The translations under genes and the position numbers were made by a program. A stretch of 64,000 bases of DNA from Octopus sinensis (lineage: Eukaryota), in NCBI RefSeq assembly GCF_006345805.1, contig NC_043011.1, positions 65,670,464 through 65,734,463 of the forward strand, in the 5' to 3' direction. This document shows positions 9,021-55,066 of the stretch, in pieces; within the stretch, counting starts at the first letter, position 1, and the number at the start of each line of letters is the position of its first letter. Below the pieces are notes generated by a model. The model was not told where the DNA came from, did not search any database, and saw only the letters and a program-made list of their open reading frames with translations.

Positions 9021-9108
9021 CTGGTAGCAACCGCTATGCTTCTTGAAAGCGTCATGGCATTGCCAGCTGATATCTTCAGTTAAACATGCCAACAAGTCTT
9101 TGAAACCA
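9021..9108 (-). CDS. G1 exon 4 (88 nt): GFKDLLACLTEDISWQCHDAFKKHSGCYQ
   Basis: Acceptor aaattttcag, donor gtaagc, one open frame (phase 2 to 0), three Cys conserved in paralogs. Confidence 0.85.
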
Positions 9109-9641
9109 CTGAAAATTTAAAGCGAAGCTTTCAAATTTCATTTACGATATGATCACTTAAGACGATTCAATAATTTATCTATAAAATCTAATGAGAACGT
9201 AAGCATTCACATCAACACTAATCTCCATACGTCTCCAGCGGAACTAATGTTACATAGTCGTAGCTATGATCAAACATCTGAAATATGTGAATATCCTATA
9301 TCGCACAAGTGAATTAATTTACCTACTGTGTACAAACTGTAAAGATAAATGCTAAAGCGAAAAGTGTAATAGCTCCTAAAAGAGTTTGATATATAAGGCA
9401 AGTAAATGTCAATTATATCTAATACGTGTGTTATTAATTTATAACGACCATCAGTTTCGGAATCATTTCCTACACATTATTACTTGCAGACAAGCATATA
9501 TGGTTTATATTATATTATATTATAAAATGTTATCATATGTCTGTGTGTGTGTGTAAATGTGCATGTGTGTGCGCACCTATACGTGTGTTATATCATTATG
9601 TGTTACATATATATATATATATATATATATATATATATATT

Positions 9642-9921
9642 AAGGAAATAAAGAAAAAGCTGACAAAATAATTTAAGTAATTTAAGTAATTTAATTAGGT
9701 GAAGTTATTTTTACCGGTTGCGCATTTGTTATGCTTATCAAAAGTTTTATTTTTTAAGAGAGATACAGTTCCCTTCTGATAATTGTTTTTCCTCTTTCCT
9801 CAGAAAGGAAATCTATCTCTCTTGATAAGCATAATAAATGCGCAACCGTTAAAAAGGACTTCACCTAATTAAATTACTTAAATTACTTAAATTTTTTCGT
9901 CAGCATTTTCTTTATTTACTT
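9642..9921. mobile_element. Foldback/MITE-like element with ~100-bp inverted arms next to a (TA)n tract
   Basis: 9642-9741 is the near-perfect reverse complement of 9822-9921. Confidence 0.8.
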
Positions 9922-10359
9922 TTTTTATATATCACAACTCGTGTTCCACTTCTCCTTTTTTAAATGTATATATATATATATATATATATATATATATATA
10001 TATATATATACTGACAGGAAATTAAGCGAATAATGAAATTAGGAACATCAAGTATATGCTATTCATTAAATACATCAACTAAAATATATGTATATATCTA
10101 TATATACAACCAGAGAAAAAGCAAGAGTTGAAAGTTTGAGATGATGAAAATGGTACCTGTAAATATAGAGATATTTTATTAAGTATTCCAAAGTACAGAG
10201 ACTAGAAATAAGAGCGGAAATTAAAGGAGTTTAAGAAAGAGGTAACAAGTCAAACCTCTGTTTCTAGGTTGTTGGGAATGCACATTAAGGAGACATGTAA
10301 TTCCTCTAAATATGGTGCAGTATGAATGCAATTAACATTGCATTGAGTAGAAAAGAAAC

Positions 10360-52360: not shown

Positions 52361-52577
52361 TTTTTTTTTTTTTTCAGTCATTTGACTGCGGCCATGCTGG
52401 AGCACAACCTTTTAGAGTGGTGAAAGAGTACAGCAGGGATCACCAACTCCTGCCGGAGCCTCGTGGAGCTTTTAGGTGTTTTCGCTCAATAAACACACAC
52501 AACGCCCGGTCTGGGAATCGAAACCGCAATCCTCCGACCGCAAGTCCGCTGCCCTAACCACTAGGCCATTGCGCCTC
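52361..52577 (-). mobile_element. Young tRNA-derived SINE with poly(A), unit C only
   Basis: Minus strand: A box TGGCCTAGTGG, B box GGTTTCGATTCCC, 3' end shared with the 12857-13240 SINE. Empty sites at ~4255 and ~28770. Confidence 0.9.
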
Positions 52578-55035
52578 TATGTATATAGAGACTTTAAAAT
52601 AAACACATATATGTGTCCGTGTGTGTGTGTATGCGTGTATGAATAAGTGTTTGTGTGTGTTTGTGCCTGTGTGTGTCTGAAATCCTAGTGTCTCTGTTAG
52701 CAATCAGTTCCAAATGTAGCGACCAGAAGCCACTGAGCAACCCTCATTGGATTCAATCTCGCACAAGGCCATTATTTGATAAATGCATTATAGTTGCTGA
52801 AAGATAAAGAGGAGAAAAGTAAACCAGATGCCAAAACGGAGTGTGGGAGAGAGTTTCATTCGGCATCCATTGAATTACGGTACACATTGAGGACAGCATT
52901 TAGGAGCTTACAGTTTATGCTCAGACCACTTACACAATTGGATGTACGGTATTCCAGTCTCATTTATTTGAAAACTTCAAAACCTAGAAAGGGCTGACCT
53001 CAAGAAACCTTCCAATAAATTTGACCCCCCTTTTTCCTCTAAGGATATCAGAATATATTTTTGTCCCCTTTAACAGCAAGCAATTTCGTGATAGTGTGTT
53101 TTTATTTATTGAAGCTATTTTATTTTGATAGTAGTCTGCTGTGTTTGTTTTCTTTTGGCTGAGGTTAGTGTAGTCGGAAGTGGAGGAGTTGCGAATTTTC
53201 CTGTTTTTCATATTGTACGGTGTGCTGTAGTTGAGGCTCACATAATTTTGTTGCTCCAAAAAACTGTTAAAAGTTTTGCCCTGTTATTTTTGTTTTGTTT
53301 TGACAAGTGTGTGTGTCGTGCATGCTGCTGCTGTTTGCTCGGTAGTTGGGGTTGGAATTGGCCTTTGCCTTGCTGCTCTTTTCTCAGCTTCCTCTACTTG
53401 CTACTTTCCATTTCTACTTTGCATCACTTTCTGTTGAGATCTTTTCGGGATACGGCCTATTTCCTCCACCAATTTGATGAGAATACAAACTGTTCCAAGT
53501 TTACTAAAATATACGTTCCTACACTCATTTATATTATTTACATTCGACGGATATTTGTCCTCATCTTGTTTGTTGTTATCACAACGTTTCGGCTGATGTA
53601 CCCTCCAGCCTGTTGTAAACCGTAGCTATTTGAGTAATTGAGAAAATCTCCACGTTCTGGTGACATGTCTTACATCTACCCCTATGTCTTCTAGAGCAAG
53701 ATCCAGCTAGGCCTCAGTTGCTGCTAGGGGTGCGGTTTTTACCGACATGCCCAAAGATGGCCATCGCCTTCCTAGTTATAACAAAAATCTAGGATTGCGT
53801 GGCAACTTGCACTGTCCTCACCGTTGCATAAATAAATTTCTCCTACCACTAATATTGCCGTTATTTAAACCTTTGTGGCAACTGTAGTTTTCCCTGATGA
53901 CAATGTTTGTGTATGTGCCCGTTTATGTGTGTCCTTGTACGTAGGTGTGTGTGTGTATGATACTGTGTATATATGTATGTGTAGATGCGTGAGTTTGTGT
54001 GTACAACAGAATTATTTGATTACATCATCTTAAAATTGTCCTACATTATTAAGTTGAAGTATTCAGTTTGCAGGTGGTGGAATTATAAACCTATTCCTGT
54101 ATGATCCGTTGTGTTAAAAAACCTAACAGCGAATATTTGAGTTCTTTAACAAAAGTCATGAAAATGATACTCAGATATTAATGTGTATTATACTTCCGGT
54201 ATAATTGACAAATACTTATGAAACATATTTCGTGAGATTCCGATATCACAACAGAAAATGTGTGACGAAGTTTTACACATTAAATATAAAAAATAATTCA
54301 GCTTAGATTTTCAAACTTATCTTTACCTAAACTCATTTGGATACCTTTATTTCAATATGTATAAAGTGTTGTTTCAGCAACTAGTAAATGCTATGGCAAA
54401 GAATAATTAATACATTCTGTCTTTGAAATGAAACTCAAACGTTAATATGTTTTTATCCGTACATTTTGCTAAATATTCAGATATCAAACAATTTTAATGC
54501 AAATATGAAAGTATAATTTATTGAAGACATATTTCAGATATTTAGAATATCAAAAGAAATACAACACTAAAACAGGGAATCTTCATTACGGTATTTATTT
54601 TATTTAGTAGTTCTTAAGTAAAATCACCAGAAGTGCAGTACGGATTTTCGATATCGGGGATACCATCTGTAAAATGAATAGGGAAAAGGTTATGTAGGAA
54701 TGGGGGAAAGTATTGTGGTAAGAGTTATGCAAATATTTCCTTAAAATATATTTACATTTATCAAATGCTTCGGAGCTTGCCTAACAAAACTATGCATTAT
54801 TTGCCGAAGAAACAAGTGGTTAAATGAGAGAAAGATGTAGCATCTGGCCAGTTAAAAGAGTTTTAGCTTGATAGAAGGCAGAGAATGCCGTACCGTAAAT
54901 CAGTGCGAATTGGGTCCAATCTGTACATCCCTGATGATACCTACGTGTTATATATTGAAACACATCTACCGCTGGGCTACCCACTGTAAGATTTTAATCA
55001 TTGTTATAAATATTGAATCACATGAAATTACGTAC

Positions 55036-55066
55036 CTTAGCGTGGTTTCTGGAATTATACTTCGTC
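55036..55066 (-). CDS. G5 last coding exon: DEV-stop (CDS 55066-55055)
   Basis: Same splice sites as G1; 7 of 31 nt differ. Confidence 0.6.

Follow-up and report, generated by a model that had tools for sequence, protein, structure and literature searches.

The stretch of DNA considered here, termed the window, comprises 64,000 nucleotides (nt) of the Octopus sinensis genome (NCBI RefSeq assembly GCF_006345805.1, contig NC_043011.1, forward-strand positions 65,670,464 to 65,734,463). Unless another sequence is named, positions are counted from its first letter. The window carries a tandem array with five copies, G1 to G5, of a gene encoding a small cysteine-rich protein, all on the minus strand. 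A preliminary description of the region from 9021, the donor (3′) end of the 88-nt exon 4 of G1, to 55066, the acceptor (5′) end of the 31-nt exon 5 of G5, had read the array as an exon-by-exon mosaic in which short conversion tracts swap exon cassettes among paralogues. Here, we focus on the small coding exons of G1, G3 and G5, which are sharply diverged within surroundings that are otherwise 96–100% identical. The apparent mosaic fits a single gene tree with very unequal exon branches, and the diverged tracts may have entered the array by gene conversion from family members outside the available sequence.

Organization of the array

The window is AT-rich eukaryotic DNA (26–48% guanine plus cytosine, GC) with many microsatellites and relics of short interspersed nuclear elements (SINEs), miniature inverted-repeat transposable elements (MITEs) and long interspersed nuclear elements (LINEs). 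An Rfam scan and a transfer RNA scan of the window gave no matches. Self-comparison reveals a unit of ~24 kb that is repeated ~2.6 times in the window, and three blocks of this unit, X1, X2 and X3 (table 1), are mutually 96–98% identical, X1 and X3 being the most similar pair. An older sub-duplication of ~2–3 kb, with ~82% identity, lies inside every unit. Each unit contributes one full gene (G1, G3, G5) and one 5′-only chimeric pseudogene (G2, G4). Between units, the identity of introns is 95.0–98.3%, that of the 5′ and 3′ flanks 97.0–97.1% and that of intergenic DNA 95.7–97.4%, a figure that takes in pseudogene copies and transposons. The units are young whole-block duplicates. Since introns, intergenic DNA and transposons are equally alike (95–98%), a recent duplication of the whole unit explains the likeness of the introns, and the preliminary proposal that introns are homogenised by conversion loses its footing, the introns being no more alike than the DNA between the genes.

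Units that are 96–98% identical and rich in microsatellites and transposons are hard to assemble, and some or all of them could in principle be haplotypes or collapsed or expanded repeats, with the alternative exon types described below being alleles or mis-joined pieces. Such an artefact is highly improbable. The window is free of N bases, private transposon insertions and deletions, several in number and cleanly joined, tell the units apart, and exon-restricted divergence would still need explaining even if the copies were allelic.

Gene models and relatives

The five gene copies were rebuilt independently, and the models match those of the preliminary description. Exon 1 is found five times in the window, exon 3 four times (it is missing from G5) and exons 4 and 5 three times each. 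The splice phases are compatible (1 / 1-2 / 2-0 / 0), and the predicted precursors of G1 (79 residues) and G3 (78 residues) each begin with a signal peptide and end in -GK at the C-terminus; their six conserved cysteines lie in a domain of ~65 residues that follows the signal peptide. Intact reading frames are confined to G1 and G3; G1 carries exons 3 and 4 of B-type, and G3 carries both exons of A-type. The numbering adopted in the preliminary description implies an exon 2, which the gene appears to lack: the best candidate (13639–13677) is unused in the annotated relatives, lies within one arm of a palindrome, a MITE-like element, and has been lost from G3, where the reading frame is unharmed.

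Searched against a protein database, the spliced G1 model gave no candidate; the window copies are not in the database. One convincing relative, LOC128249941 of Octopus bimaculoides, emerged from a search with a profile built on the three exon-4 peptides, and a later family profile added LOC128249942 (proteins XP_052830540-42). The proteins of these two loci, here P0002–P0006, are annotated only as ‘uncharacterized protein’. The top match of the exon-4 profile, a tick repeat protein (P0001), matched through nothing but a 15-residue motif, present in 8 repeats, and was attributed to chance. LOC128249941 is collinear with G3 over exons 1, 3 and 4, as is LOC128249942, and in both ‘exon 3’ follows exon 1 immediately (...LISHAATS...), which validates the gene model in the window. 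Between G3 and LOC128249941, the peptides of exon 3 are 79% identical and those of exon 4 69%, and the six cysteines and one tryptophan are invariant in seven family proteins. Searches of the family protein against Pfam (none at or above threshold) and PDB sequences found no match, the relatives have no precomputed Pfam domain, and the AlphaFold model of P0003 has a mean predicted local distance difference test score (pLDDT) of 57, which is insufficient for fold searching. The family is octopus-restricted, uncharacterised and cysteine-rich.

The window copies differ from these relatives at the C-terminus. Their exon 5 is 31 nt long and has an immediate stop; that of the relatives is 27 or 30 nt. 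The supposed terminal exon nevertheless keeps a GTACGT donor, and the relatives splice exon 5 into a further, hydrophobic tail exon (MASPISTILTALVVILFKKN). Relics of this tail exon, which resembles a membrane anchor or a glycosylphosphatidylinositol (GPI) signal, sit beyond the exon 5 stop codon. The window copies may thus be secreted forms without the hydrophobic tail, or decaying genes.

Two O. bimaculoides loci on chromosome CM046618.1, L001 (25.5 kb) and L002 (78 kb), provided the outgroups. The outgroup paralogues are H1 (LOC128249942), H2 (LOC128249941), H3 and the very divergent H0, of which H2 is closest to the window genes. Family copies number five in the window and three in L001, with one more divergent in L002. 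The non-coding identity of the outgroup paralogues to the window genes is 72–83%; with 83% as the best value, neither L001 nor L002 contains the window. H0 is unannotated and lies on the minus strand of L002 (34447–35085), ~24 kb upstream of LOC128249942 and in the opposite orientation; its exons 3 and 4 are only ~460 nt apart. The LOC128249942 model covers L002 10001–68024 (58 kb) with recognisable coding exons only in the last 9 kb (59165–68021), and either has a far-upstream first exon or is over-extended.

Divergence confined to small exons

Exon 1, encoding the signal peptide, shows 0–1 differences among G1, G3 and G5. Exons 3, 4 and 5 behave otherwise. In exon 4, G1 and G5 differ at 3 of 88 positions, and G3 differs from them at 28/88 (G1) and 29/88 (G5); in the 400 nt upstream, G1 and G3 differ at only four positions (exon versus flank, Fisher p = 5e-19). 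In exon 5, G1 and G3 are identical (0/31) and G5 departs from G1 at 7/31, within flanks that show 0/200 differences between G1 and G5 (100 nt each side; Fisher p = 4e-7). In exon 3, G1 and G3 differ at 46/103, and G3 differs from G2 at 20/103 and from G4 at 19/103; the upstream 100 nt shows the reverse order, with 2/100 differences between G1 and G3 (exon versus flank, Fisher p = 2e-14) and 17/100 between G2 and G3. The three groupings drawn in the preliminary description (G1 with G5 in exon 4, G1 with G3 in the terminal exon, and G3 with G2 and G4 in exon 3 despite G1-type flanks) are therefore reproduced as distances; they express similarity and are not defined by derived states in common.

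Each of the three diverged tracts begins at most 6 nt from the splice acceptor. On the donor side, the intron divergence noted in the preliminary description is clear for exon 4, where the first ~90 nt downstream hold 15/91 differences versus 1/150 upstream before homology breaks, and weaker for exon 3, where 10/98 differences in the first 100 nt give way to 200 nt of microsatellite that are ~25% diverged and the derived changes are divided between G1 and G3. The spill-over of the exon-4 tract stops at the breakpoint of a ~280-bp deletion. The intron segment missing there from G1 and G5 is present in G3 and common to H1 and H3; it is thus ancestral, and the deletion is carried by G1 and G5. 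Microsatellites aside, no divergence clusters in the 6-kb X block are stronger than the exon-4 and exon-5 tracts; a few minor non-exonic ones are present as well.

The otherwise near-identical exons 4 of G1 and G5 are separated by an adjacent multi-nucleotide change, CTGAAGAT at 9076–9078 in G1 versus CTAGAGAT at 57420–57422 in G5 (Glu to Arg), which hints at clustered mutations in exon 4.

Direction of change and a single tree

Comparison with H2 indicates on which side the exons changed. For G3, the distance to H2 is 13.6% in exon 3 (adjacent intron 13.3%), 17.0% in exon 4 (intron 17.3%) and 11.1% in exon 5. For G1, the corresponding values are 46.6% (intron 13.3%), 35.2% (intron 18.0%) and 11.1%. 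G5 lacks exon 3 and stands at 36.4% in exon 4 (intron 17.3%) and 22.2% in exon 5. Three-way site counts agree, with 20 G1-only versus 4 G3-only changes in exon 4 and 38 versus 4 in exon 3, and ~12 changes in the ~90 nt after exon 4 are derived on G1/G5. As the exons of G3 lie at intron-level distance from the outgroup, the exon changes are derived on the G1/G5 side, and G3 appears to have kept the ancestral exons. The changes can then be assigned to exon 4, ~90 nt of intron and the deletion in the probable ancestor of G1 and G5, to exon 3 in G1, and to exon 5 in G5.

Background informative sites (9:2:4 favouring G1 with G5) point to the relationship ((G1,G5),G3), which is weakly supported. In neighbour-joining (NJ) trees, exons 4 and 5 agree with this background tree; for exon 3, G1 forms a long basal branch (80% bootstrap, uncorrected distances) that may be a long-branch artefact, and the placement of exon 3 is ambiguous owing to this long branch. 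Against this tree, the grouping of G1 with G5 in exon 4 agrees with the background relationship, that of G1 with G3 in the terminal exon reflects an autapomorphy of G5, and that of G3 with G2 and G4 in exon 3 can be read as similarity kept from the ancestor, G1 being the outlier. The apparent mosaic can thus be read as ancestral similarity overlain by lineage-specific bursts. Although the preliminary description had taken the segments to support different trees, one tree with very unequal exon branches appears to fit them all once the outgroup paralogues are added, the ambiguity of exon 3 notwithstanding.

Chimeric copies and recombination elsewhere in the family

Recombination between paralogues is real elsewhere in the family. 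G2 and its twin G4 have an H3-like promoter and exon-1 module (81.6% identity to L001 15635–16090), joined to an intron 1 and exon 3 of G-type. In quartet counts, the exon-1 module sides with H3 (26:2:2) and the region of exon 3 falls with G-type (20:2:1). Such a structure suggests that two adjacent genes of the family underwent unequal crossing-over ahead of the triplication of the unit. In both pseudogenes, exon 1 has a frameshift through the loss of 1 nt (39 nt in G2 versus 40 nt in H3), and exon 3 contains an in-frame TAG.

A patch of near-identity between G1/G5 and G2/G4 (table 1) stands out from a 14% divergent background (G1–G2 run of 97 nt, permutation p = 4e-4; G5–G2 run of 122 nt, p = 2e-4) and is a candidate gene-conversion tract. 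In O. bimaculoides, H2 is itself a mosaic, with quartets of 13:6:4 versus 17:0:2 for different segments. It is H1-like (84–92% identity) around exon 1 and the promoter and around the tail exon, and G-like elsewhere; the H1-like segments are candidate conversion tracts between neighbouring O. bimaculoides genes. Adjacent segments with conflicting topologies are thus seen for G2/G4 and for H2, and exons 3, 4 and 5 fit one tree instead.

These observations bear on the model of the preliminary description, in which older paralogues have their introns homogenised by ongoing conversion while exon cassettes are exchanged, with G2 and G4 as donors and combinatorial peptides as the outcome. The significant identity patch between full and partial copies agrees with it, as does the lower divergence within 400 nt of exons (~1–2% vs 3% background), and G3 shares its type of exon 3 with G2 and G4. 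The model is nonetheless improbable. The similarity of intergenic and transposon DNA to that of introns speaks against it, and a single tree accommodates all three exon observations. Exon 3 of G3 is nearer to H2 than to G2 and G4, from which its distance equals the flank background, and is probably ancestral and not recently received. G2 and G4 are pseudogenes without exons 4 and 5, and they bear no mark of recent donation. No intact recombinant combination is found among the window copies, where the two intact genes carry unmixed B3+B4 and A3+A4 exons and G5 lacks exon 3, so the proposed combinatorial diversity does not materialise. What persists of the conversion model is the presence of exon-centred tracts, the spill-over into the intron after exon 4 and exchange within the family; the swapping of cassettes among G1–G5 falls away.

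Origin of the exon tracts

We tentatively favour the possibility that the tracts were replaced by ectopic gene conversion from divergent, unsampled members of the family and then filtered by selection. Non-allelic gene conversion or template-switch repair would write tracts in from divergent paralogues outside the available sequence, and selection on the peptide would decide which replacements persist. Such selection could account for the location of the tracts on exons and for the preserved reading frame and cysteine framework. The alternative is accelerated evolution in situ, by fast point and multi-nucleotide changes in the exons of G1 and G5 after the triplication, with no foreign sequence imported; diversifying selection would drive it, perhaps aided by a local rise in mutation rate, along lines suggested for conotoxins and snake toxins. 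We regard it as rather unlikely, for reasons that lie mainly in the silent and non-coding changes.

Judged by synonymous change, the exon sequences appear old and their flanks young. At conserved residues, G1 and G3 differ in 3/21 synonymous codons, comparable to 6/45 between G3 and H2, and the synonymous divergence (dS) of the G1 and G3 exons is 0.32–0.42 vs ~0.02 in the flanks, a more than tenfold difference that in-situ change would have to explain. The derived exon changes fall in even measure on all three codon positions, and their transition to transversion ratio (20:38 vs 98:93 in the background, p = 0.035) is ~0.5, as in saturated sequence. Because the exon-4 tract runs into the intron, with ~12 derived changes and the deletion in non-coding sequence, a tract-wise process such as gene conversion is indicated and not codon selection alone. 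G5, a copy without exon 3, still bears the exon-5 burst, which also counts against change in place. Nor is the family hypervariable in general: the ratio of nonsynonymous to synonymous divergence (dN/dS) among G3, H1, H2 and H3 is 0.44–0.78, and the exons and introns of older paralogues diverge to a similar degree (G3–H2 13.6% vs 13.3%; H2–H3 20–24% vs 26–33%).

Several points weigh against conversion from outside, and some of them favour change in situ. No donor of a B-type exon 3 or 4 or of a G5-like exon 5 was found in the window, L001 and L002 (~150 kb). Random conversion end-points do not predict tracts that start at the acceptor, which are expected under exon-limited selection; the exon-5 tract also ends within the exon. 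The dN/dS of B-type versus A-type (G1 vs G3) is 1.4 in exon 4 and 1.9 in exon 3, estimated from only 15–20 synonymous sites, and fits positive selection in place, as does the preservation of the reading frame and of the cysteine and tryptophan codons. The NJ tree joins exon 4 of G1/G5 to that of G3 (57% bootstrap), and exon 4 of G3 has 4/88 changes of its own vs 1/150 in the upstream intron. The samples are small (88–106 nt per exon), site counts cannot place the B-type exons (quartets 4:1:3 for exon 4 of G1), and the tandem array is taken as assembled. Finally, exon 3 of G1 shows an excess similarity to H0 (quartets 14:2:1) for which a long-branch chance of ~7–9 was estimated, not computed. 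The idea that the B-type exon 3 came from H0 was rejected: the nucleotide distance between them is 53.6%, at the protein level H0 matches the B-type (10 residues) no better than the A-type, and 14:2:1 is near the chance estimate.

A directional, splice-site-anchored diversification has only a slender chance of being correct. In one form, repair would be templated by partly spliced transcripts of paralogues, from which the upstream intron had gone and in which the downstream intron was retained, so that tracts would start at the acceptor and run into the 3′ intron. If the splice-anchored reading were true, exon-cassette replacement would operate in an octopus-specific family of surface or secreted proteins.

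Coordinates and mobile elements

The coordinates of the gene parts, tracts and repeat blocks are listed in table 1. Copies of the MITE-like element of G1 lie at ~25056–25436, 47732–48112 and 59901–60283 (in G2, G4 and G5), and a partial copy is present in G3. The two open reading frames of the insert in G5 have no Pfam match; a fragment 84% identical to this insert is present in G1 at 12566–12834. A foldback element of ~300 bp, an inverted repeat with perfect arms (9631–9932), is inserted in intron 3 of G1 only, and G3 has at this site a different insert of ~1.1 kb (34490–35594). A ~210-bp SINE insertion at 52360–52570, present in unit 3 and not in units 1 and 2, marks the units as distinct loci. 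At the unit boundary, an (ATT/ATC)n and (AGG)n simple repeat (50399–50740) yields poly-Ile/poly-Arg and poly-Tyr/poly-Ser pseudo-ORFs (spurious open reading frames).

Table 1. Coordinates of gene parts, diverged tracts, repeat blocks and inserts, in the window unless L001 is named.
Feature	Position	Strand	Remarks
G1 exon 1	15996–16032	−	MKILIFVALLIS + 1 nt; donor GTGAGT
G1 exon 3, B-type	11688–11793	−	open frame; 3-nt insertion relative to G3; Cys/Trp framework kept
G1 exon 4, B-type	9021–9108	−	type common to G5
G1 exon 5	6715–6745	−	31 nt; GK then stop; donor GTACGT retained
G1 exon 6 relic	6232–6345	−	hydrophobic tail MVSPISKIRTALLVILLKNY*; tblastn with P0003 tail
Exon 6 relic copies	30835–30948 and 54553–54666		tblastn with P0003 tail
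G3 exon 1	39090–39126	−
G3 exon 3, A-type	37310–37412	−
G3 exon 4, A-type	33917–34004	−
G3 exon 5	31318–31348	−	identical to G1 exon 5
G5 exon 1	62674–62710	−
G5 exon 4, B-type	57365–57452	−
G5 exon 5	55036–55066	−	7/31 unique changes; DEV then stop
G2, 5′-only chimeric pseudogene	24794–27333	−	exon 1 27295–27333; exon 3 24794–24896
G4, twin of G2	47470–49956	−	exon 1 49918–49956; exon 3 47470–47572
Intron spill-over of G1 exon-4 tract	8917–9020	−	~90 nt; ends at junction of ~280-bp deletion
G5 counterpart of spill-over and deletion	~57261–57364
Intron segment in G3, missing in G1 and G5	33560–33830	−	common to H1 and H3
Identity patch, G1/G5 versus G2/G4	13639–13784	−	146 nt, one mismatch; contains candidate ‘exon 2’
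H1-like segments of H2	L001 9825–10050 and 14175–14400		H2 starts at L001 9601; windows 225–375 and 4575–4725
Block X1	2442–9594		3′ half of G1 (exons 4–6 and 3′ flank); self-BLAST
Block X2	27824–34490		copy of X1; self-BLAST
Block X3	50519–57905		copy of X1; self-BLAST
Transposon-like insert in G5	57905–59453		GC-rich (48%), ~1.5 kb; in place of intron 3 and exon 3
Palindromic MITE-like element, intron 1 of G1	13290–13677		~390 bp; reverse-strand self matches

Comparison with known systems

The pattern is known from snake toxin genes as ‘accelerated segment switch in exons’ (PMC2474615, PMC2711939). In both cases the genes form a multigene family whose products are small, secreted and rich in disulfides, introns are nearly alike among members and exon segments are replaced by distinctly different sequence, and in neither case has a donor been found. 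They differ in that the octopus tracts are whole small exons (with adjoining intron in the case of exon 4) and not sub-exon segments, that the octopus changes fit a single tree by outgroups, and that the host is a cephalopod with no known link of the family to venom.

A second parallel lies within the molluscs. Conotoxin-type families combine a conserved signal region and conserved introns with a hypervariable mature-peptide exon, in which cysteine codons are conserved in a position-specific manner. The octopus genes are likewise molluscan and encode small cysteine-rich peptides, with a conserved signal-peptide exon and mature-peptide exons that are up to 45% diverged with their cysteine codons kept (on conotoxin-type gene families, see also PMC3823881, PMC10561478). 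Unlike conotoxins, they show the exon/intron contrast only among the young array copies and not among older paralogues, two or three small exons encode their mature region, and their relatives have a hydrophobic C-terminal tail; the family has no sequence or Pfam similarity to conotoxins.

Non-allelic (ectopic) gene conversion operates in tandem gene arrays. The short tracts sharply unlike their flanks, the significant identity run and the chimeric copies with conflicting module trees all resemble its products; the three exon tracts differ in that they have no donor in ~150 kb of family sequence and have 5′ ends that coincide with acceptors. LOC128249941 and LOC128249942 belong to the same family and share the exon structure, but they have the hydrophobic tail that the window copies, with their early stop in exon 5, are without, and have no counterpart of the B-type exons.

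Implications

The array adds a cephalopod, non-venom case to the few families whose near-identical duplicates differ almost only in coding exons. As the copies are young (2–4% divergent) and outgroup paralogues are at hand, the direction and limits of each change can be read, which is rarely possible in older toxin families. The array also serves as a caution, in that ‘exon mosaics’ defined by similarity can come from lineage-specific bursts without any conflict between trees. Finally, it draws attention to an unannotated, lineage-restricted family of octopus cysteine-rich proteins, in which, as far as the sequences indicate, the copies without the hydrophobic tail may have become secreted.

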